Shown here in pieces: positions 27,256 through 55,343 of a DNA stretch of 64,000 bases. The number at the start of each line of letters is the position of its first letter. Positions within the stretch are counted from its first letter, which is position 1. The stretch is taken from the sequence record PQ898602.1. One strand, 5' to 3'. A program made the position numbers and the translations under genes. Below the pieces are notes generated by a model. It was not told where the DNA came from. It worked only from the letters and a program-made list of their open reading frames with translations, and did not search any database.

Positions 27256-29631
27256 ATGTTAAAAACCAGCATCACGGATAGAGTCGAGAGTCATCTCCTC
27301 TACACATTGGGTAAGAACCCAGATAATGCTACATCACATGACGTATACACTGCTTTGTGTTATGCGGTTCGAGACAGAATGGTTGAAAACCATTTAGTTC
27401 CCAAGTCTCCCCGTAAAGAAGTTGCGTATCTTTCTGCAGAATTTTTGATTGGACCTCAACTGAGTAACAATCTTCTCAACTTAGATATCCGCAAAGATGC
27501 TGAGAGTGCAGTTGGTAAGTTCGGATATGGTCTAGAAGAGATTCTGGATCATTCTGTTGAACCTGGACTTGGTAATGGTGGTCTAGGTAGACTTGCTGCA
27601 TGTTATATGGAATCCATGGCGACTCTGAGAGTTCCTGCCACTGGATATGGTATTAGATATAAGTATGGTATTTTCAAACAAACTATCAAAGATAACCAAC
27701 AGGTAGAGGTTACCGACAACTGGTTGCATGGTGATTGGCCATGGGAACTCTGTTACCCCGATGAGTCGGTAATGGTTGGATTTGGTGGTAAGGTAGAACG
27801 ATATGGTAATAAGGTTCGGTGGGTTCCTGAAAAGAATGTCGTCGCAGTGCCTTATGATGTTCTGCAAGCAGGATACAAGGTAGATAGTTGTGCAAAGATC
27901 CGCCTCTGGAGAGCAGACGCGATTGATGTATTTGACTTCAAAGCATTTAACCAGGGAGACTATCTTGGTTCTGTCGAGAATAGTGTGACCTCAGAGACTA
28001 TCTCTAAAGTTCTTTATCCTAATGATGGTACAGACCAAGGAAAGGAACTTCGACTGAAACAACAATTCTTCTTTGTAAGTGCTTCTCTTCAGGACATGAT
28101 TAGAAGTTTGGAAGAACGCGATCTTCCTGTGGAAGAGTTCTACAAACATTATCAAGTTCAGTTGAATGATACTCACCCATCAGTTGCAGTTGCAGAACTG
28201 ATGAGAATCCTTATGGATGATTATCACTTTGAGTGGGATCTTGCATGGGACATTACTAGTAAGTCTATCGCATATACAAATCACACACTGCTTCCTGAAG
28301 CACTGGAGAAGTGGAGTGTAAGTCTTTTCGAGAAACTTCTACCTAGACATTTGGAGATCATTTATGAAATCAACTCCAGATTCCTCCAGATCGTTAGAAT
28401 GCACTACCCTGGAGACGAGGAAACCCTTCGCAAACTTTCTATCATTGATGAGACGGGTGGTAGATATGTCAGAATGGCCAATCTTGCAACAGTCGGATCT
28501 CACCATATCAATGGTGTTGCGGCACTTCACTCAGATCTGATTACCAAGAACCTGATGCCCGAGTTCTATGATCTCTGGCCTCATAAGTTTACCAACGTGA
28601 CTAATGGTGTAACACCACGTCGTTGGTTGGCAGATTCCAACCCTGCACTTGCAGAAGTTCTTGATGAATATGTTGGTGAGGATTGGGTATCTCACATGGA
28701 TCGTCTTAGTGAATTGGAGAACTATGCAGATGATCCAGTTGTTCTTGAGAAGATCGGTGCAACAAAACTTATTGGAAAACATAAGCTTGCACAATACATA
28801 AAGAAGACACTTGGCATTTCTGTTGATCCGTCAAGTATGTTTGATGTGCAGGTAAAGAGAATTCATGAGTACAAACGACAGCATCTCCTTGCTCTATGGA
28901 TTGTGTCTCGGTATTTGTATATCAAAAATCATAAAGACGATTATGTTGTTCCACGTACAGTAATCTTTGGTGGTAAAGCCGCACCTGGTTACTACATGGC
29001 GAAAGAGATCATTCGTTTCATTTGTAATGTTGCGGAGACTATCAACTCTGACCCAGACATGGATGGGAAGTTACGTGTGGTCTTCCTACCAAACTATAGT
29101 GTGAAGTTGGGTGAGAAAGTTTATCCTGCTGCAGATCTCTCTGAACAGATCTCAACCGCAGGTAAGGAGGCGTCTGGTACTGGTAACATGAAGTTCCAGA
29201 TGAATGGTGCTTTGACTATTGGTACACTCGATGGTGCAAACGTTGAGATCCGTGATCTGGTTGGTGAAGAGAACTTCTTCCTCTTTGGTAAGACTGAAGA
29301 AGAGATTGGTCAACTATGGGCGAATGGATACAAACCTCAGTTCCATATGAGTGCTTCTCTATTTGAAGCAATCGAACTCATCAGATCGGGTCACTTCTCC
29401 AATGGTGATAAAAATGCATTCAATTCCATCATTGATAATTTGATGGAGAGTGATCCATTCTGTGTTTGTGCAGACTTCTCTGACTACTGCCGTGCTCAGA
29501 ACGTTGTGGATAACACATGGGGTAACAGAAAGGAATGGAATCGTAGATCTCTGATGAACATTGCGAGATCTGGATTCTTCTCTTCGGATAGATCTATTCA
29601 AGACTACTGCGATAACATTTGGAAAGTATGA
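27256..29631 (+). CDS. glgP: glycogen/alpha-glucan phosphorylase (GT35)
   Basis: 791 aa; SAEFLIGPQL, GLGNGGLGRLAACY, QLNDTHP, YTNHTLLPEALE, NGVAALHS, VKRIHEYKRQ, GGKAAPGY, EASGTGNMK (PLP lysine). Confidence 0.97.
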   Translation: MLKTSITDRVESHLLYTLGKNPDNATSHDVYTALCYAVRDRMVENHLVPKSPRKEVAYLSAEFLIGPQLSNNLLNLDIRKDAESAVGKFGYGLEEILDHSVEPGLGNGGLGRLAACYMESMATLRVPATGYGIRYKYGIFKQTIKDNQQVEVTDNWLHGDWPWELCYPDESVMVGFGGKVERYGNKVRWVPEKNVVAVPYDVLQAGYKVDSCAKIRLWRADAIDVFDFKAFNQGDYLGSVENSVTSETISKVLYPNDGTDQGKELRLKQQFFFVSASLQDMIRSLEERDLPVEEFYKHYQVQLNDTHPSVAVAELMRILMDDYHFEWDLAWDITSKSIAYTNHTLLPEALEKWSVSLFEKLLPRHLEIIYEINSRFLQIVRMHYPGDEETLRKLSIIDETGGRYVRMANLATVGSHHINGVAALHSDLITKNLMPEFYDLWPHKFTNVTNGVTPRRWLADSNPALAEVLDEYVGEDWVSHMDRLSELENYADDPVVLEKIGATKLIGKHKLAQYIKKTLGISVDPSSMFDVQVKRIHEYKRQHLLALWIVSRYLYIKNHKDDYVVPRTVIFGGKAAPGYYMAKEIIRFICNVAETINSDPDMDGKLRVVFLPNYSVKLGEKVYPAADLSEQISTAGKEASGTGNMKFQMNGALTIGTLDGANVEIRDLVGEENFFLFGKTEEEIGQLWANGYKPQFHMSASLFEAIELIRSGHFSNGDKNAFNSIIDNLMESDPFCVCADFSDYCRAQNVVDNTWGNRKEWNRRSLMNIARSGFFSSDRSIQDYCDNIWKV

Positions 29632-30308
29632 ACGTCTGGGTTGGGTACGATACCCGTGAACATGATGCTTTCGAGGTCTGTAGATATAGTATTCATAAAC
29701 ACAGACCCGAAGTAGAAGTACATGCAATCGAACAAAAAAATATGAGATTACTGGGTCTTTATACTAGACCTGTTGATGATCTTGCTTCGACCGAGTTCTC
29801 TCTGACTCGGTTTCTTACTCCTGCCCTATCAGAATTTAAGGGGTGGTCACTCTATTGTGATTGTGACTTCCTCTTTTTAGATGATATTCAGAAGTTGTTT
29901 GATCTTGCAGATCCTAAGTATGCTGCAATGGTAGTTAAACATGACTATAAACCAAAGGGTCGTTATAAGATGGATGGACGTTTCCAATGGTCATATCCAA
30001 GAAAGAACTGGAGTTCTCTGATTCTATTCAATAACGAACACCCAGCACATCAGTCTCTGGATGTCAACAACATGTCTCCTGTTGAGTTGCATCGATTTAC
30101 TTGGATTGATGATAAAGATCTAGGTGAACTACCTGGATGTTGGAACTGGTTGGTTGGTTATGATGATGATTCATGGCCATATAAAGATCCATCTGCACTT
30201 CATTATACCGACGGCGGTCCATGGTTTGAGGAGACTAAGGATTGCGACTACGCCGATCTATGGAACAATTCTTATGAAGAGTGGAGTAAGACTAAGATTT
30301 CTGGATAA
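29628..30308 (+). CDS. glycosyltransferase (GT8-like phage type)
   Basis: STEFSLTRFL, DCDFLF, YPRKNWSSLILFN, LHYTDGGPWF. Confidence 0.8.
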   Translation: MNVWVGYDTREHDAFEVCRYSIHKHRPEVEVHAIEQKNMRLLGLYTRPVDDLASTEFSLTRFLTPALSEFKGWSLYCDCDFLFLDDIQKLFDLADPKYAAMVVKHDYKPKGRYKMDGRFQWSYPRKNWSSLILFNNEHPAHQSLDVNNMSPVELHRFTWIDDKDLGELPGCWNWLVGYDDDSWPYKDPSALHYTDGGPWFEETKDCDYADLWNNSYEEWSKTKISG

Positions 30309-30984
30309 CTATACCTGTACGGAGATTGCATTTACATCTCCTCCTAGGTTTTGTGATTTTGAATATCAGAAAGATCAATATGTCACTGAGTCTTTTATCC
30401 GTAAAGGTTTGAAAGATTTTTACAAGGATATTCAAGCACTTAAAAAAATTTACGATACTCCTATAGACATATGTGATCCATACTTCCATCACATAGATAA
30501 CTTTCCTTCTAGGTTTACTAAGTTTGCATATCTCCGTAAAGAATTTTCTGAAGGTGTTCCCATGGAACGCCCGATATTTTATGGATCAGATTCTGATTTT
30601 CTTATAGGTTCTGGTAGATGTCTTATCGTTGGAACTTACTTCAAAGATAAGAAGATTGATATGGTAAGAGTCAATGAAAGAAAATTTATTGAGTCAACCA
30701 AAAAAATATATGACTTGATTCATAGTTTAAAGAATGAAAGTGAGGATGTCGTACTTCATGTTGAGAAGTCGGATTTTATAGATGCCTATAAGATAATGGA
30801 TATTACATTTGGAAAGTTGGAAGATTGCATAACTCGTAGTGGTGGTGTTCTTGATTTTTGGCATGAACAACCTGACTTTCAAATATTGAGAAGAAAGGTA
30901 AGGAAAATAATTCAGTCAACTAATATAGATAATATTAACCAATTGTATGATGTTCTAGATGAAATATCATTATTATTATACTAG
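30274..30984 (+). CDS. uncharacterised protein, paralogue family X copy 1 (ParB/Srx-like core)
   Basis: FTKFAYL..RPIFY..LIGSGRCLIVGTYFKDK. Confidence 0.6.
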   Translation: MKSGVRLRFLDNYTCTEIAFTSPPRFCDFEYQKDQYVTESFIRKGLKDFYKDIQALKKIYDTPIDICDPYFHHIDNFPSRFTKFAYLRKEFSEGVPMERPIFYGSDSDFLIGSGRCLIVGTYFKDKKIDMVRVNERKFIESTKKIYDLIHSLKNESEDVVLHVEKSDFIDAYKIMDITFGKLEDCITRSGGVLDFWHEQPDFQILRRKVRKIIQSTNIDNINQLYDVLDEISLLLY

Positions 30985-30985
30985 T

Positions 30986-31735
30986 ATGAAGAGGTGGCTT
31001 CAACACCACGAAGAATTTGAACCTGATAACTTTAGTGTTTCACTTTCTTATTTTGAAAATGTAAATATCCCTCAGAGGTTTTCTCTAGATTATCTTTCTG
31101 ATTTTATCGGGCAGGTTCAAAAGTTTAAGTCACTAAAGAGTTCTAAAGATGTGAAACTATCATATCTTGAAACAAAAGTCAGTATGTTTACTAAGTATCC
31201 ATACTTGTACAACTCTCTTAGAAAACACAACAAGGCTCTGTATCCAGTTGTTGTTAATTATGATCAACATACTTTATCTTCTGGAACTGGTAGACTTCTT
31301 TTAATGACGAAGTATTTTCCAGATATGAAAATAGATCTCGTCTTGAATGACCATAAAAATCCTCAATATAGAAACTATGAAGAGTTTATAGAAGAACGTA
31401 TTTTGCCCAAGTGGGATTTGGATGATACGTATTCATGTTATTCCGATTTCTTTACTGGTGAGGTGGGTGTTCCTCAACGCATGAATACATTATGTGGATT
31501 TGAGTTTGCTAAAGAAGGATATGAAAAGACATGCCCTACTAAAACATCAGCACAGAAGATACCATATGCAAGAGTAATTTCTAGTGATTATGCCATGTGG
31601 GAAAGAGTTCATTCTATACTGATGGAATCTAATCCCATGACACTTGTCCAGTATGATGAGTTGCTAGATAGAATTATATTTGATAATATTGAATATGTTG
31701 ATAGTACACAAGTTGAAGACTTATTAAAGACATGA
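30986..31735 (+). CDS. family X copy 2
   Basis: FTKYPYLY..YPVVV..SSGTGRLLLMTKYFPDM. Confidence 0.6.
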   Translation: MKRWLQHHEEFEPDNFSVSLSYFENVNIPQRFSLDYLSDFIGQVQKFKSLKSSKDVKLSYLETKVSMFTKYPYLYNSLRKHNKALYPVVVNYDQHTLSSGTGRLLLMTKYFPDMKIDLVLNDHKNPQYRNYEEFIEERILPKWDLDDTYSCYSDFFTGEVGVPQRMNTLCGFEFAKEGYEKTCPTKTSAQKIPYARVISSDYAMWERVHSILMESNPMTLVQYDELLDRIIFDNIEYVDSTQVEDLLKT

Positions 31736-32436
31736 CTACTATCGTAATTCCTGCAAGACTTAAGAGTGAAAGACTCAGAGAGAAAGCCATCGAAGACATT
31801 GATGGTCTTACTCTTATACAAAGAGTGGTAAAACAATGTTTAAAAACGCCATTTTCTGTAACTTTGGTAACTGACTCGCTCAAAATAGCAGATTCTATTT
31901 GCCCAAGGAATGTCAATATCCTTTGTTTCGATGAAAATGCATCTTCTGGGACAGAAAGAATTGCAAATGCCATAGAAATGATCCCTGGTGATGATATTAT
32001 TAATGTTCAGGGAGACCAACCATTCATTGATCCTGGTGCCATCATAGAGATGTCCGAGGTGATGGAACAGATGCAAGAGTACCAAGTTGTTACTCCTTAC
32101 AAATACTATGATCGCAGAAGTGATTATGGTGTTAGTGGTAGTAGATCGAAGGTAGTTACTAGTCAGAGTGGCAGAGTCATGTACTTTAGTCGATATCCTC
32201 TGGGAACAGATCGACTCAAGATTCACATGGGGATCTATGGTTATCGTAGAAAGTTCTTGGAGAACTTCCACACATTAAAAACCTCCCGACTAGAAGAAGA
32301 CGAGAGGTTGGAACAGATTAGATTTTTGGATAATGATATTCCAGTCTATGCTTACGAAACTAAGTATGACGTTTTTTCTGTGGATGTGCCAGAAGACCTA
32401 GAACACGCTCGAAAGATAGCTTGGGAATGTGACTAG
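31732..32436 (+). CDS. kdsB: CMP-Kdo synthetase (3-deoxy-manno-octulosonate cytidylyltransferase)
   Basis: IPARLKSERL..K, SGTERI, NVQGDQP, YFSRYP, HMGIYGY, LEQIRFL, SVDVPEDL. Confidence 0.92.
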   Translation: MTTIVIPARLKSERLREKAIEDIDGLTLIQRVVKQCLKTPFSVTLVTDSLKIADSICPRNVNILCFDENASSGTERIANAIEMIPGDDIINVQGDQPFIDPGAIIEMSEVMEQMQEYQVVTPYKYYDRRSDYGVSGSRSKVVTSQSGRVMYFSRYPLGTDRLKIHMGIYGYRRKFLENFHTLKTSRLEEDERLEQIRFLDNDIPVYAYETKYDVFSVDVPEDLEHARKIAWECD

Positions 32437-33132
32437 AGGAATCTGGGAGTGTCGGTCTGAGAGTGCCCTAGAGGGATCTGGATGCACCTCAGCAAAGAAT
32501 GCTTCTGCACCCCAGATCTTTGCACTCTGTGCAAGAGGTTGTGCATACAACCAGTTACCACCAGTTGTGGATTCTCCACCTTCCTGAGTGGAATGAGTTG
32601 AATCAAAACAAACTTTGAATCCAGCACTCTTTAGTTTATGAATGGTTCGGAAGTCAACTACCAGGTTGTCATAACCGAAAGATGTACCACGTTCGCAGAT
32701 GTAAAAGTCTTCGCAACCATATGCTTCCATATTCTCACCCAGGAGAATTGCTTGACGAGGGGACATGAATTGTCCTTTTTTGACATTGACTAATTTACCA
32801 GACTCTGCAACTGCTTGGAGCAAGTCGTTTTGACGACATAAAAATGCAGGGACTTGGTATGCGTCTACATAGTTGGATAGGATCGCAACGTCTTGTGGTT
32901 CATGGACATCAGTGATGACTTTGTAACCTGCATCACGCAGTTTTTCAAAGATCTTGATTGCAAATCTAAGTCCATGTCCACGAAAACTTTTATGACTGGA
33001 TCGGTTTGCCTTATCAAAGGATGCCTTGAAGTAGTAGTCTACACCTTCGGGTAGATTCTCAGTAATAGTTTTCGCTACTAGGAATGCATCTTCTTCAGAT
33101 TCCAGTAGACAGGGACCTGCAAATAATTTCAT
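32398..33132 (-). CDS. kdsA: Kdo-8-phosphate synthase (metal-dependent type)
   Basis: AGPC, FKASFDKANRSS, TDVHE, PAFLCRQ, VKKGQF, CERGTSFGY, FDSTHS, EVHPDP..ALSD. Confidence 0.93.
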   Translation of the reverse strand: MKLFAGPCLLESEEDAFLVAKTITENLPEGVDYYFKASFDKANRSSHKSFRGHGLRFAIKIFEKLRDAGYKVITDVHEPQDVAILSNYVDAYQVPAFLCRQNDLLQAVAESGKLVNVKKGQFMSPRQAILLGENMEAYGCEDFYICERGTSFGYDNLVVDFRTIHKLKSAGFKVCFDSTHSTQEGGESTTGGNWLYAQPLAQSAKIWGAEAFFAEVHPDPSRALSDRHSQIPLVTFPSYLSSVF

Positions 33133-33155
33133 TCTATGATAGAATACTTTCATTA

Positions 33156-33164
33156 ATTATACCA
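33156..33164 (-). promoter_or_regulatory. extended -10 promoter candidate for kdsA
   Basis: TG-G-TATAAT on the minus strand, 24 nt upstream of the ATG at 33132. Confidence 0.45.
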
Positions 33165-34060
33165 TGATGGCATCATATTTTCCAGAGTACAACAGACTAA
33201 GAGAGTGTTGGGTTGGTCGTGCATATGATTCTTCACTCGTAACTGATACATTTGTTAAAGATATCCTTGATGAAACCGAAGAGGATCTGGTAAACTTTAG
33301 TCAAATGTTAAGAGATTTGGAAGTCGAAGTCAAACGACCGACTTACAAGAATCCTGATGTTACTCGGAAACCACAACTTCTACACGCACGGGATCACCTC
33401 CAATATCTTAACGGCAAACTTTATGTCGGTCCAAGGTATGAAGACAATATTGCTGATTGGTTGGAGTTGCTTGATGGTAGAACTCCTTTTGTCACTCTGG
33501 ATAATCTATGTGCGCCTTCTGTAGTTCGTGCCGACAGAGTTTACTTTGATGCGGTATCATGGACACGTAAACGTTTTGAGTATTTTCAACATGGGAATCC
33601 TGATCTGCCTTGTGTTTTTGAACGACTCTCTTCTCGCGATTTTAACATCGAACGTCATACAGATGGTGTATTCTGTGTAGTCAAGGAAGGTGTAATCATC
33701 TCTACTCCACAAGGGCGTAACCTAGAGTATCTATTCCCTGAGTGGGATATCTTATATCTCGACCAGAATACTCAAGATCTCAATGATATGGCGAAGACCA
33801 AAGGTAAGTTTATTTGGTCTCCAGATCAGATCCCTGATGATTACAGGGACTGGGTGGGATATTCACCTGAGACTTTCTTTGATGTCAATGCACTTGCTGT
33901 CGATGAGAAACACTTCATGTGTACTCGATACAATAAACAGGTGTTCGATTTCCTGAAGAAACATAAGGTGGAACCAATTATCGTACCCTTCCGTCATAGA
34001 TACCTATGGGATGGTGGACTCCATTGTATGACTTTCGATTTCATTAGAGATGTTAGTTAA
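33164..34060 (+). CDS. amidinotransferase family protein (copy 1)
   Basis: RLRECWVGR, HARD, RHTDGVF, FDVNAL, GGLHCMT (catalytic His and Cys). Confidence 0.8.
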   Translation: MMASYFPEYNRLRECWVGRAYDSSLVTDTFVKDILDETEEDLVNFSQMLRDLEVEVKRPTYKNPDVTRKPQLLHARDHLQYLNGKLYVGPRYEDNIADWLELLDGRTPFVTLDNLCAPSVVRADRVYFDAVSWTRKRFEYFQHGNPDLPCVFERLSSRDFNIERHTDGVFCVVKEGVIISTPQGRNLEYLFPEWDILYLDQNTQDLNDMAKTKGKFIWSPDQIPDDYRDWVGYSPETFFDVNALAVDEKHFMCTRYNKQVFDFLKKHKVEPIIVPFRHRYLWDGGLHCMTFDFIRDVS

Positions 34061-34745
34061 TAAACAAGGAATAGTCGATGCAGAGTTGCAGACGTTTCCG
34101 TGGGAACATATTTTAGTTGATAATTTTATTGAAGAAAATACCTTCAATGAACTTCTGAAGATTGCAGATCATATTAAAAGTATTGAATCTACCTTCAAAG
34201 AATCTATTCATTATGTACCAGAATATAATGAATGTGTATTTAATTTGAAACACCTCATTCAGATTGGTGTAGATCCAAAGGTTGTTGAACTTTATGCAAA
34301 AGTTCTGGATGATATCAAGGAACTGAAAACTACAATATGGGATAAGTTTTCTGATCATCGGCATTGTGAAGAGGATAGGACTTATTGTAATGGTCATTTA
34401 AACTGGACAGGTTCTGGTGGTTACTATCACATTCATCCAGATTCCCATACTAAAAGTGTAAGTATTATTGTTTACTTTGATCCTGACGAAAATAACACTA
34501 CGACTCTTTGGGGTAAACCTGGAGTCGAATCTACATGTGTTAGACCTGAGTGGAAAAGGAACAGAGCCGTTGTATTCTGCCCTAACAAATCCACTTGGCA
34601 CTCTGTAGATACTACACATAGTAATAGGATGACTCTTGCATGTTTTATTGAGTTTGTTCCTGAAGATAAAAGTTCATACGGAAAGTTCACTGTAGAAAAT
34701 ATCAGATTCAGTAAAGATTACTCAGTAACTCAACTTAGAATCTGA
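34050..34745 (+). CDS. 2OG-Fe(II) oxygenase-like
   Basis: PWEHILVDNF, HIHPD, EWKRNRAVVF..TWHSV..R. Confidence 0.75.
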   Translation: MLVNKQGIVDAELQTFPWEHILVDNFIEENTFNELLKIADHIKSIESTFKESIHYVPEYNECVFNLKHLIQIGVDPKVVELYAKVLDDIKELKTTIWDKFSDHRHCEEDRTYCNGHLNWTGSGGYYHIHPDSHTKSVSIIVYFDPDENNTTTLWGKPGVESTCVRPEWKRNRAVVFCPNKSTWHSVDTTHSNRMTLACFIEFVPEDKSSYGKFTVENIRFSKDYSVTQLRI

Positions 34746-35470
34746 TGAAAGTTCGTTGTATATACGAAGAGAATATAAGAAATAGACTTCCTAATGTATA
34801 CATACCCATTCAGAAGTTCTGTAAGTTTCAATATTTGCGTGATGTAAATCTGAATAGTGCAAAGTATGATCGTATATTTGATCTATCCTTTGATGAGTTC
34901 AAACGTAATGTGAATTTCATTGCACAGAGAAAAGAGAACTGGAATAACTATAGAGTTTCATCAATACTTAAATTACCCATTCTATACAGAGACATGATGA
35001 ACTATGGGAAGTGGAGAGACCCTATCGTCTTCACCCCATATGAACATACTATACCCGATGATGGTTCTGGAAGAACATTGGTAAGTAAGATTTTCTTTCC
35101 AGACATGCCTTATGATCTTTTGTATTATGAAAAGGAACATGATGATCTGAAATCCTTAAAAGAACTGATTAATATCTTTCATGATAATGTTAATCCAGGT
35201 TCCTACAAAGTCATTGATGTTTATTACAAGTTATATGGTGACTTTGCATATAGTAGACAGATTGAGTTTTTGAAAGAAGAGAAAGAAGTAAAAGAATTTT
35301 GTGGTAGTTGGACTTTGGATATTGTTCAGGAGTTGACTTCTACCCTATTCAAAGAAATGATCAGAAAGATTCGTAGTGATCCGCCTCAGACAGATGATGA
35401 TTATATTGAGTTATTAAAAGACCTTGTAAAGATGGATTATAAATTTAATAGTAAGTCTATATCTTATTGA
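34745..35470 (+). CDS. family X copy 3
   Basis: LKLPILY..DPIVF..DDGSGRTLVSKIFFPDM. Confidence 0.6.
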   Translation: MKVRCIYEENIRNRLPNVYIPIQKFCKFQYLRDVNLNSAKYDRIFDLSFDEFKRNVNFIAQRKENWNNYRVSSILKLPILYRDMMNYGKWRDPIVFTPYEHTIPDDGSGRTLVSKIFFPDMPYDLLYYEKEHDDLKSLKELINIFHDNVNPGSYKVIDVYYKLYGDFAYSRQIEFLKEEKEVKEFCGSWTLDIVQELTSTLFKEMIRKIRSDPPQTDDDYIELLKDLVKMDYKFNSKSISY

Positions 35471-36150
35471 AAATGTTCTACAACATTGATAGTATTCTCA
35501 AATCTGAACTTCGTAAGGAACCTTGGGAACATAAAGTTGTTGATAATTCAATCAATCCAGAGGTCTTCAAGACTCTCTCCCTTATTCCTAAGATGATCCT
35601 GAATAAGAATAGGAGAGGGACACCTTTGATGAGTAAGTTCATTCATGAATCCAAGGTGGATTATGAGGGTGCTGTTATGGATCTTGAAGAACTACTTAGA
35701 GTGGGTCTTGCGGAAAATATGGTAGAACTTCTTTATGATTGTGGTAAGTCTTTGTTTGATGCTAAAGATCAGATCTTAGAACAATTCTCTTCTTACCAGA
35801 AGTCTTCTGATGGAGAATATCTTTTTGATGTAAACTTGCAGTTTTTATTCCCAGGAAATGAAGTGAGTTTGCATGATGGTGGGTACAATAGGACTCTTTC
35901 ATGTGTTACTTACCTGAGCCCAGATATACAATCGGGAACACGGCTCGGTGATTCAACAGAAGTTGAATGGAAGAAAAATAGATCAATAATCTTTGCCCCA
36001 CATAAAGGAGTGACTTGGACTTCTTATGAAAATCCCTATGAGATGCAGTCGTTCCGATTTGTCATCAGTACTTTTGTTGAATTTGTAGAATATAAGAATA
36101 TCGAATTTTCTACTGGTAAGAAGTTTAAATTCTTGACTGGTTCCAAATGA
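35467..36150 (+). CDS. degenerate 2OG-Fe(II) oxygenase-like paralogue of 34050
   Basis: PWEHKVVDNS, EWKKNRSIIF; HxD reads HDG and the distal His reads T. Confidence 0.65.
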   Translation: MKMFYNIDSILKSELRKEPWEHKVVDNSINPEVFKTLSLIPKMILNKNRRGTPLMSKFIHESKVDYEGAVMDLEELLRVGLAENMVELLYDCGKSLFDAKDQILEQFSSYQKSSDGEYLFDVNLQFLFPGNEVSLHDGGYNRTLSCVTYLSPDIQSGTRLGDSTEVEWKKNRSIIFAPHKGVTWTSYENPYEMQSFRFVISTFVEFVEYKNIEFSTGKKFKFLTGSK

Positions 36151-36887
36151 ATATTTCTTACTATGGTCACCCTCTGGAGATGTATCCTGGGTGTGTGAAT
36201 AAAGAGACTGAAGAAGATACAAGGGTATGTAAACAATACTACTTTGAAGAAGAACCAAAGATATTGAACTATGAATATCTTTCCGAGACTACTCTGTCAA
36301 AGAAAGATATGACTCATACGATCTCAGTTTTCATGGAGGATGTGAACCATGTGAAGGATGGGAAGTACGATGATCCTGATGATGTTGTGGTGAATACGCC
36401 TACACACTTCACCAAACTTCCAACTCTTTACAGACAACTAAAAGAGGATCCATGCCTTCACTATCCAATATGGTATTACCCTAATGGGAACATGTTCAGT
36501 GGTTTGGGTAGAACTCTGATCATCACTAGGTATTTCAGAGAGATGACTTTGGATAAAGTCGTTTGCAATACTCAAGATGGTGGTTCAGTGCAGGACTTGA
36601 TTGATCGTATTAGTCGGAGTCGATACTGGAAAAACAAGTCCTTGACAGGGATGAATGCAGTTGTTATGATTGCGAACGTCGAAGCGCCACCGCATCAACT
36701 CTTTGTCCGTCAGTTGGAGTTTTCGGATAAGACATCCGACCAATTCCTTTCTGGACCTTGGGTGGAGTCATACCTCCATATGGATGACCTTTGGAGAGAG
36801 ATGAAGAAACTCATTATCTCTTTCAATACGTCAGAACCAAGAGACTACTTGCGGCTTCTAGATAAATTGATTCGGATTGACGCTTGA
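36147..36887 (+). CDS. family X copy 4
   Basis: FTKLPTLY..YPIWY..FSGLGRTLIITRYFREM. Confidence 0.6.
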   Translation: MNISYYGHPLEMYPGCVNKETEEDTRVCKQYYFEEEPKILNYEYLSETTLSKKDMTHTISVFMEDVNHVKDGKYDDPDDVVVNTPTHFTKLPTLYRQLKEDPCLHYPIWYYPNGNMFSGLGRTLIITRYFREMTLDKVVCNTQDGGSVQDLIDRISRSRYWKNKSLTGMNAVVMIANVEAPPHQLFVRQLEFSDKTSDQFLSGPWVESYLHMDDLWREMKKLIISFNTSEPRDYLRLLDKLIRIDA

Positions 36888-36917
36888 CATTATACGGAAA
36901 TCCGTATATTATAAATA
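36884..36917 (+). promoter_or_regulatory. overlapping early and late promoters of psbA
   Basis: TTGACA-N17-TATTAT with TATAAATA at 36910-36917. Confidence 0.7.
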
Positions 36918-54387: not shown

Positions 54388-55343
54388 AAAGTACAAATGA
54401 GTGGGATCCACTCAAAAAAGTGATTGTTGGTGTTGCTGATTATGCAAGAATCCCTGAGATGGATAAAAGTCTCAGACACATCAACTATGCAGATAGACAA
54501 GATGTTTCCGATGTCATCAGTGGATTGTATCCCAAACAAGTCATTGATGAAGCAAATGAAGATCTAGAAAACTTTGCAAACTTCCTAAGAGTTTGTGGAG
54601 TGGAGGTAGTAAGGCCGCATCCTGAACCAACTGGATATTACAACTTCTGCCCCAGAGATGTTGTCGTTGTTCATGGTGAAACGGAGATTGCGGCTCCGAT
54701 GCCTTTGAAAGCAAGACGATTTAACTTTGGGTCGATTGCACATTATTTGAACAACCTTACACCTGTTACTTGCACTTACAATGATGCATTGTATAACGAG
54801 AATTGTATTGGTGATAAGGACACTCTTGCACTGACAGAGTACGAACCTGCCTTTGATGCTGCCAACATCATCAGAGCGAACGATCAGATCCTCTACCTCC
54901 TGTCTAATAGTGGTAACAGGAAAGGTGCCCAGAAACTCCAGACACTCCTGCCAGAGACCGAGGTACACCTCTTAGAGGGTGTTTATAGTTATATGCATAT
55001 AGACACGACTGTCGCGTTCCTGAGGGAGGGCCTGCTACTTGCCAACCCCGAAAGGATTAAGGATCGTGATGTCCTTCCTGGTCCATTCAAAGACTGGGAT
55101 ATTATCTGGTGTCCAGAACCAGTTGACATCGGACATTACCCTGGATATAACAATGCTTCCACTTGGATTAACATGAACTTATTCAGTATTAATCCCAATC
55201 TGGTTGCTCTTGAGATGAATCAAGAACCCACTAGAAAAGTCCTGGAACAACATGGTATCGAGTGTGCAATGTTGCCTATGAGACATTCTAGAACTCTAAG
55301 TGGATGTTTCCACTGCGTAACCTTAGACCTGGAGAGAGGATGA
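54384..55343 (+). CDS. amidinotransferase (StrB1/AGAT-like, copy 2)
   Basis: NEWDPLKKVIVG, CPRD, FDAAN, YMHIDTT, GCFHCVTLD (Asp-His-Cys triad). Confidence 0.9.
   Translation: MKSTNEWDPLKKVIVGVADYARIPEMDKSLRHINYADRQDVSDVISGLYPKQVIDEANEDLENFANFLRVCGVEVVRPHPEPTGYYNFCPRDVVVVHGETEIAAPMPLKARRFNFGSIAHYLNNLTPVTCTYNDALYNENCIGDKDTLALTEYEPAFDAANIIRANDQILYLLSNSGNRKGAQKLQTLLPETEVHLLEGVYSYMHIDTTVAFLREGLLLANPERIKDRDVLPGPFKDWDIIWCPEPVDIGHYPGYNNASTWINMNLFSINPNLVALEMNQEPTRKVLEQHGIECAMLPMRHSRTLSGCFHCVTLDLERG

Follow-up and report, generated by a model that had tools for sequence, protein, structure and literature searches.

Why should a phage of marine cyanobacteria make and activate Kdo, and whose glycan would receive the sugar? 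The question is raised by two genes in the final 64 kb of Synechococcus phage S-SCSM2R (PQ898602.1; whole record 244,186 bp), the stretch that was analysed here, called the window below and used for all coordinates. Window positions 29600-36900 match that record at 100% identity. One answer, given by an earlier examination of the letters alone (the sequence-only reading), is that the phage builds a glycan foreign to its host. Another is that it keeps up, or boosts, a CMP-Kdo supply of the host's own kind.

That the phage bears intact genes for Kdo synthesis and activation is confirmed; their presence is not new. The genome paper (BMC Biol 2025, PMC12801897) already identifies KdsB (ORF264) and KdsA (ORF265), and terms them the first in a cyanophage; the viral AMGs of the surface ocean include kdsA and kdsB (PMC10653327), and KdsA is present in a Tara viral genome (PMC5332604). 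These reports stop at annotation: they leave aside the kds cluster of the hosts, the partner enzyme of Cdi type, the steps that the phage lacks and the metal class. PHROGs holds no family for KdsA or KdsB.

The genes are convergent, tail to tail, with a 39 bp overlap: kdsB occupies 31732..32436 on the plus strand, and kdsA 32398..33132 on the minus strand (annotated to 33153), where it is the sole minus-strand gene across a 31-kb annotated stretch. The cassette lies upstream of psbA in a hypervariable island (approximately 30283-36864) that is entirely different in a sister phage contig.

The two enzymes

KdsA is predicted to be a metal-dependent Kdo-8-phosphate synthase. It passes the cut-off of NF003543, the KDO8P-synthase equivalog (279.4 bits against 242), and matches PF00793 at E 7e-45; TIGR01362 gives 266.9 bits, under its cut-off of 314, and the best DAHP synthase model gives 91 bits, far under the NF003543 score. 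In an alignment to Aquifex aeolicus KDO8PS (1FWN; E 5e-60), the metal ligands C11, H185, E222 and D233 correspond to C15, H187, E222 and D233 of the phage protein; all four are invariant in 25 of 25 close relatives. The metal type assigned by the sequence-only reading is supported. As annotated, the protein has 251 aa; because its relatives begin at the Met8 codon, the true start is probably that ATG, at 33132, the coordinate at which the sequence-only reading ended its feature without mention of the minus strand.

KdsB (234 aa) is likewise a predicted CMP-Kdo synthetase, as had been proposed. It exceeds the cut-off of NF003952, the NCBIfam KdsB subfamily model (200.6 bits, cut-off 193), and matches PF02348 at E 9e-34; it falls below the equivalog cut-offs of TIGR00466 (117.7 against 155.2) and NF003948 (163 against 281). 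Its closest solved structures are all KdsB or KpsU. On alignment to 3DUV and 1VH3, the nucleotide- and Kdo-binding motifs are kept: IPAR, SGTER, QGDQP, LEQxR and VDxxEDL, the third with Gln in place of Glu where QGDEP is usual.

Both genes are under strong purifying selection, with dN/dS for kdsA of 0.02 against the L116 lineage (dS 0.33) and 0.09-0.16 in deeper pairs, and for kdsB of 0.10-0.25 (0.10-0.18 against relatives). Acting as predicted, KdsA would condense PEP and arabinose-5-P to Kdo-8-P, and KdsB would activate free Kdo to CMP-Kdo.

Steps absent from the phage

Across the whole 244,186-bp record there was no match at E<=10 to KdsC (TIGR01670), to the KdsD/KpsF arabinose-5-P isomerase (TIGR00393), or to the three groups of Kdo transferase searched, WaaA/GT30 (PF04413), KpsC/S (PF05159) and GT29 (PF00777). 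Even at that threshold the genome yielded no protein of the SIS or HAD type. The lack of a recognizable kdsD, kdsC or Kdo transferase, first noted for the window, thus extends to the full genome. KdsC and KdsD were not found in two further complete kdsA-bearing viral genomes either, and the 10-kb surroundings of 88 viral kdsA loci contained KdsC once and KdsD three times.

With KdsD, KdsC and any known Kdo transferase lacking from the phage, the isomerase, phosphatase and transferase steps would have to come from the infected cell. The proposal that its own OPP genes feed Kdo synthesis is for the same kind of reason only half plausible: zwf, gnd and talC are present (PMC12801897), but no arabinose-5-P isomerase links ribulose-5-P to KdsA. 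In hosts lacking KdsD, KdsA would be without a known substrate, a point that runs counter to boosting.

Kdo genes in the host family

The published LPS of WH8102 and of CC9311 is without Kdo, and here the reviews agree with the sequence-only reading. S-SCSM2R, isolated on WH7803, infects both strains, which sits uneasily with a boosted supply.

The further step, to a glycan foreign to the host, is weak. Genes kdsA, kdsB, kdsC and kdsD are each found, clustered and above curated cut-offs, in 24-25 of 61 sampled host-family genomes (~40%), and are not detected in the other ~60% of the sample. Marine Synechococcus strains with KdsA include MIT S9451, RS9916, UW105, UW140 and MEDNS5, and the isolation host WH7803 is not among the named hits; across the phylum, the KdsA profile is over its cut-off in 58 of 151 cases. 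WaaA is found in only 2 of the 61 host-family genomes; set beside kds genes in ~40%, this rarity argues that Kdo is a strain-variable host sugar that would go into something other than the classical lipid A core.

The most constant companion of the host genes is a Cdi-like glycosyltransferase, present in 23 of 24 kdsA-positive host genomes and directly upstream of kdsB in 17. A GT29-like gene was not found in the host family, and in ~18 of the 24 kdsA-positive genomes, as in the phage, no known Kdo transferase was identified; this too counts against boosting.

Ancestry of the cassette

Recent capture from a host is rejected as the source of the phage genes. Phage and host Kdo enzymes are 32-45% identical, and KdsA of marine Synechococcus is of the Asn, non-metal type, whereas that of the phage is of the Cys type; because of this distance and this difference of class, the cassette was not copied recently from a host. 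The phage proteins form a separate KdsA clade of 26 sequences (SH-aLRT 100) that is not nested in host KdsA, and in all 26 the active-site residues are kept. Phage-clade kdsA genes lie in T4-like cyanophage contexts (hsp20, regA, gp43, uvsX, gp41, mazG), and the cassette occurs in several cyanophage lineages and in >575 IMG/VR stretches. The sequences describe an old, mobile phage cassette. The low identity and the difference in metal class are also observations that count against boosting a host pathway.

A glycosyltransferase partner and other neighbors

The Kdo genes have a candidate partner in ORF261 (29619..30308, plus strand). It resembles the Selaginella 'protein CDI' over its full length (50% identity, E 9e-85); the corresponding gene of the host cluster has 45% identity to plant CDI. 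The Pfam GT8 model scores under its cut-off (17.9 against 24.3 bits), while the structure model (pLDDT 92) has as its top PDB matches GlyE, WbbM, 3TZT, LgtC and glycogenin, and the motif D81-C82-D83 is invariant. Model and motif together indicate a GT8-fold, DxD glycosyltransferase of the nucleotide-diphospho-sugar type, and not a phosphatase or isomerase. The suggestion that this GT8-like neighbor supplies the missing steps therefore survives in part: the family is a recurrent kds partner, adjoining kdsA/kdsB in hosts, in cyanophage contigs and at 27 of 88 IMG/VR loci, with one copy in each of three complete kds-bearing phage genomes, but it offers neither the isomerase nor the phosphatase.

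The evidence does not support placing ORF261 in any known class of Kdo transferase. It has the GT8 fold and DxD; its plant homologue Cdi (At1g64980, GT8-like; RG-II) transfers L-galactose from GDP-L-Gal, not Kdo, according to a review; and ORF261 itself clusters with phage copies that lie away from kds genes. The sister phage contig keeps the Cdi-like gene and lacks kds genes at the matching site, another observation counter to boosting.

Family X (ORF262, ORF263, ORF268 and ORF270, four paralogues) had also been offered as a source of the missing steps. Its relatives in the Atlas are only viral hypotheticals and ParB-like leads, and it occurs in the sister contigs L103 and L104, where kds genes are absent from the corresponding position; it is rejected as the missing isomerase or phosphatase, and is not linked to Kdo.

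Divergent from kdsA is ORF266 (33164..34060, plus strand), a protein of putative amidinotransferase fold whose C-terminus weakly resembles arginine:glycine amidinotransferase, HsvA and SxtG (E 0.002-0.1). It contains GGLHCMT, the catalytic-cysteine motif of amidinotransferases, and has a paralogue, 24% identical, at 54507-55337. Over approximately 32394-34013, a block that contains kdsA and ORF266, nucleotide identity to L116 is 87-100%, against just ~59% protein identity for kdsB; kdsA and ORF266 have thus moved together as one near-identical block. The window shares the order kdsB-kdsA-ORF266-oxygenase with phages of the L116 and L124 types, three lineages in all; cassettes of the L002 and L008 types are without ORF266. 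A Kdo role for ORF266 is putative. The oxygenase, ORF267, is a 2OG-Fe(II) enzyme with a generic PF13640 match and no other Pfam match, the Kdo-hydroxylase family included; 2OG oxygenases are very frequent in S-SCSM2R.

Role of the phage genes

The reading preferred here, with a probability of about 0.55, is that the phage raises or maintains CMP-Kdo for a strain-variable, host-type Kdo surface glycan. Many picocyanobacteria own the pathway together with a Cdi-like glycosyltransferase, as the phage has Kdo genes and a Cdi-like gene of its own, and for that reason a boost to a supply of the host type is the most likely role. During infection, KdsA and KdsB would keep up or raise the CMP-Kdo supply; the host would provide the KdsD, KdsC and Kdo transferase steps; and the CMP-Kdo would feed a glycan built by the phage's many glycosyltransferases (its set numbers 13). 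Carriage of its own committed steps makes sense because S-SCSM2R infects 20 of 24 tested strains, from 8 clades. Candidate purposes of such remodeling are blocking later phages, shedding decoys and decorating virions.

A more specific proposal, which we regard as tentative and rather doubtful, is that picocyanobacteria and marine phages share a WaaA-independent Kdo-glycan pathway, with the Cdi-like GT8 as its constant glycosyltransferase and a GT29-like enzyme of sialyltransferase type joining in some viral cassettes. Both enzyme families also take part in making the Kdo-bearing RG-II of plants. The phage kdsA, kdsB and Cdi-like genes would then install or boost the pathway, and the Cdi-like enzyme would transfer Kdo or add an adjacent sugar.

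The opposing answer takes the glycan, whether on the virion or as a new surface polymer, to be one never made by a host without Kdo, with a non-homologous phage enzyme giving arabinose-5-P and the phosphatase step. It would account for the Kdo-free LPS of two infected strains, the ~60% of sampled host-family genomes without kds genes, the 13 glycosyltransferases carried along with zwf, gnd and talC, and the Cys class of the phage KdsA as against the Asn class of marine Synechococcus. It is nevertheless unlikely, for the phage genome yields no SIS-type or HAD-type protein at E<=10; family X, with its ParB-like leads, is found in a sister contig that lacks kds genes at that position; and kdsA, kdsB and the Cdi-like gene form a native cluster in many hosts.

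The product might instead be a modified octulosonic acid (hydroxylated, amino or amidino), made by way of ORF266 together with the 2OG-Fe(II) oxygenase beside it. The gene order held in three lineages, the joint travel of kdsA and ORF266 and the catalytic-cysteine motif of the latter speak for such a product; no aminotransferase is adjacent, however, ORF266 is missing from two cassette types, and the oxygenase is a generic member of a class abundant in this phage, with no match to Kdo hydroxylases. We consider this improbable. That the genes are mere passengers and play no part in infection, as the turnover of the island in the sister contig and the solitary minus-strand position of kdsA might suggest, is hardly credible in the face of dN/dS values of 0.02-0.25, active sites kept in 26 sequences, and recurrence of the cassette in several cyanophage lineages and >575 IMG/VR stretches.

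Comparison with known systems

In fold and motifs the phage enzymes are the same as bacterial KdsA of the metal class (1FWN) and KdsB/KpsU, and the KdsA shares the Cys/His/Glu/Asp site. They differ in being compact (~244 and 234 aa) and in being encoded by convergent genes with overlapping ends; unlike the bacterial pathway, that of the phage is without KdsC, KdsD and WaaA, and its KdsB has QGDQP and scores under the strict equivalog cut-offs. Among viruses, the giant viruses CroV and Fadolivirus have a predicted Kdo pathway of all four steps, with fused bifunctional proteins (PMC9614988). The likeness lies in the bacterial type of the Kdo synthesis genes; of the four steps, the phage has genes for the synthase and cytidylyltransferase alone. 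In plants, RCKT1 of family GT29 is the proposed Kdo transferase (review); a GT29-like gene is found in other viral kdsA cassettes, and in neither S-SCSM2R nor the host family.

Kdo synthesis is, then, common but patchy in marine picocyanobacteria, although their characterized LPS is Kdo-free and known Kdo transferases are nearly absent from them. Time and again, phages carry the two committed steps alone, plus a Cdi-like glycosyltransferase. The pattern points to an undescribed Kdo surface glycan, manipulated by phages, in phototrophs that are very abundant in the ocean; surface glycans of this kind are likely phage receptors or shields. It also presents a bacterial and viral counterpart to the plant RG-II enzymes, and one that is testable.

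A promoter candidate for kdsA

The lone minus-strand gene may have a host-type promoter of its own. A sigma-70-like candidate, matched by consensus, lies at 33156..33184 on the minus strand (TGGAAA, a 17 nt spacer and TG-n-TATAAT), with 10 of 12 consensus positions and an extended -10. The element TGnTATAAT recurs ~24 nt upstream of the kdsA start in four lineages (the window, L116, L124 and L002/L119), in flanks that have diverged.

Identity and layout of the phage kds genes

The enzymes of Kdo synthesis and activation that a sequence-only reading placed at 31732-33132 in Synechococcus phage S-SCSM2R are confirmed, and have already been published: ORF264 as KdsB and ORF265 as KdsA, called the first in a cyanophage (BMC Biol 2025, PMC12801897). 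The phage was isolated on WH7803; its record (PQ898602.1, 244,186 bp), of which the window is the final 64 kb, matches window positions 29600-36900 at 100% identity. ORF264 (kdsB, 31732-32436, plus strand) encodes a cytidylyltransferase for which every top-scoring family model is a KdsB model; it passes NF003952 with 200.6 bits (cut-off 193). It retains the IPAR, SGTER, LEQxR and VDxxEDL motifs, but has QGDQP where other KdsB proteins have QGDEP. ORF265 (kdsA, minus strand, annotated at 32398-33153, probable start 33132) scores 279 bits against NF003543, the KDO8P-synthase equivalog (cut-off 242); DAHP-synthase models reach only ~90 bits. When the protein is aligned to the Aquifex aeolicus enzyme, C15, H187, E222 and D233 occupy the four metal-ligand positions; the earlier assignment to the metal type is therefore correct.

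The two genes are convergent and overlap by 39 bp; across the 31 kb of annotation examined, no feature other than kdsA is on the minus strand. Its annotated start (33153) is absent in relatives and lies 3 nt past a candidate -10 box; in relatives KdsA begins at the counterpart of the Met8 codon (33132), the position at which the interval given by the sequence-only reading also ends, and Met8 is the likely start. About 24 nt upstream of the Met8 codon is a TGnTATAAT element, kept in four lineages with otherwise diverged flanks; this consensus match suggests that kdsA could be transcribed by unmodified host polymerase.

Metagenomic relatives of the phage KdsA are plentiful, at 98%, 80%, 70% and ~57% identity, followed by a drop to <50%. 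The 26 closely related sequences group in a single clade (SH-aLRT 100), apart from host-family KdsA, and all retain the four metal ligands; their contigs are T4-like cyanophage DNA (hsp20, regA, gp43, uvsX, gp41, mazG). When S-SCSM2R is compared with the source genome of contig L116 (IMG/VR, complete, 239 kb), kdsA has a dN/dS of 0.02 at dS 0.33, rising to 0.09-0.16 in deeper pairs; values for kdsB are 0.10-0.25.

Kdo as a patchy host sugar

One way to understand these genes, proposed from the sequence alone, is that the phage makes CMP-Kdo for a glycan foreign to its host. The enzyme identities and the missing steps on which that interpretation drew hold, but the non-host glycan is unsupported, because kds clusters occur in ~40% of 61 sampled host-family genomes (the family around marine Synechococcus MIT S9451, its centre found through psbA). 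Counting genomes above each curated cut-off (n=61), KdsA, KdsB and KdsC are each found in 24 and KdsD in 25, with the four genes clustered. The order in MIT S9451 (G001 C1:978304-983022, the same as L096:10278-15149) is kdsA, a GT8-like (Cdi-like) gene, kdsB, a sulfotransferase-like gene, kdsC, kdsD; other KdsA-positive named strains include RS9916, UW105, UW140 and MEDNS5. Reviews bear out that the LPS of WH8102 and CC9311 is free of Kdo, and describe LPS preparations from some other cyanobacteria in which Kdo is present. With kds genes in ~40% of genomes and two Kdo-free LPS structures, Kdo is a host sugar of patchy occurrence. WaaA is present in only 2 of the 61 genomes and KpsC/S in 5-7, so most kds-bearing genomes lack a known Kdo transferase; to judge from gene content, host Kdo is used mostly without one. 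Of 24 strains tested, the phage infects 20, WH8102, CC9311 and MED4 among them; given this patchiness, its hosts probably differ in Kdo capacity.

Both KdsA classes coexist within this one bacterial family: five marine Synechococcus proteins (P0241, P0261, P0278, P0282, P0325) have Asn at the first metal-ligand site, the non-metal class, and two other genomes (L097, L098) have Cys.

Missing steps and the GT8-like neighbour

No kdsC, kdsD or Kdo transferase had been recognized in the window, and a search of the rest of the genome had been proposed. Over the whole phage record, KdsC, KdsD/KpsF, WaaA, KpsC/S and GT29 have no match at E<=10, a threshold at which the broad KdsC and KdsD models match all 14 control genomes. 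KdsC and KdsD are also absent from two other complete kdsA-bearing viral genomes, and of 88 viral kdsA loci, one has KdsC and three have KdsD at a distance of up to 10 kb; thus synthase plus activating enzyme alone is the phage rule. The paralogous family X (ORF262, 263, 268 and 270), a candidate for the missing steps, was rejected, having no link to Kdo.

The GT8-like ORF261 (29619-30308) shares 50% identity with "protein CDI" of plants; its predicted structure is a GT8-type GT-A fold (pLDDT 92) with an invariant D-C-D motif. At the level of the family, this enzyme is a true Kdo-pathway partner. Of the 61 host-family genomes, 25 have homologues ~40% identical to ORF261; the gene is present in 23 of the 24 that are KdsA-positive (the sole exception has WaaA), and in 17 it immediately precedes kdsB in the same orientation. 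Among phages, it directly adjoins kdsA/kdsB in two other cyanophage lineages, lies within 10 kb of kdsA in 27 of the 88 IMG/VR loci, and is present as one copy in all three complete kds-bearing genomes. In a tree, cyanophage copies adjacent to kds genes form the sister group of host copies (SH-aLRT 98); ORF261 clusters instead with phage copies lacking a kds neighbour, and therefore its nearness to kdsB here may be partly accidental. In Arabidopsis, Cdi adds L-galactose to RG-II, with GDP-L-Gal as the donor (review); the GT8-like enzyme is less likely to be the Kdo transferase itself than a nucleotide-diphospho-sugar transferase that works next to Kdo.

Mobility and wider viral cassettes

L103, a sister contig that derives from a Tara scaffold of 237 kb, shares its gene order with the window in two segments, one running from the gene for UDP-glucose dehydrogenase to the GT8-like gene and the other starting at psbA. 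Between these, it has entirely different DNA, with no DNA-level similarity to window 30283-36864, and lacks the kds genes and ORF266; the stretch between the GT8-like gene and psbA that holds the kds genes is therefore a hypervariable island. Within it, a block at ~32394-34013 (kdsA plus ORF266) is 87-100% identical in nucleotide sequence to IMG/VR contigs L112-L118, and in L116 occupies another genomic neighbourhood. Sequence identity falls off abruptly where kdsA and kdsB overlap, KdsB being only ~59% identical in protein between S-SCSM2R and L116, which places a recombination boundary there. ORF266 (33164-34060, divergent from kdsA) encodes a short amidinotransferase-fold protein (298 aa) with an amidinotransferase-type C-terminus and a GGLHCMT motif; its distant paralogue (24% identical), the amidinotransferase at 54507-55337, belongs to the window's second glycan cluster. 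Three lineages share the order kdsB-kdsA-ORF266-2OG oxygenase.

More distant viral cassettes have the order KdsB-KdsA-Cdi-like-GT29-like. That at L172:9379-12164 has a GT29 (sialyltransferase)-like gene above the Pfam cut-off; the gene recurs in 19 loci (also L134, L146, L148, L164, L170 and 13 further IMG/VR loci), and is absent from S-SCSM2R and the host family. The GT29-like proteins retain VGNS and PSAG motifs. RCKT1, the proposed Kdo transferase of plant RG-II, belongs to GT29 (review); Cdi (GT8-like) and RCKT1 represent the two families implicated in making RG-II in plants. Earlier reports list kdsA and kdsB among surface-ocean viral AMGs (PMC10653327), KdsA in a Tara viral genome (PMC5332604) and a whole predicted Kdo pathway in giant viruses (PMC9614988). 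An unannotated megaphage record (LR756500.1, uncultured, 462 kb) carries adjacent KdsB-like (33% identity) and KdsA-like (41%) genes on one strand at 130143-131870.
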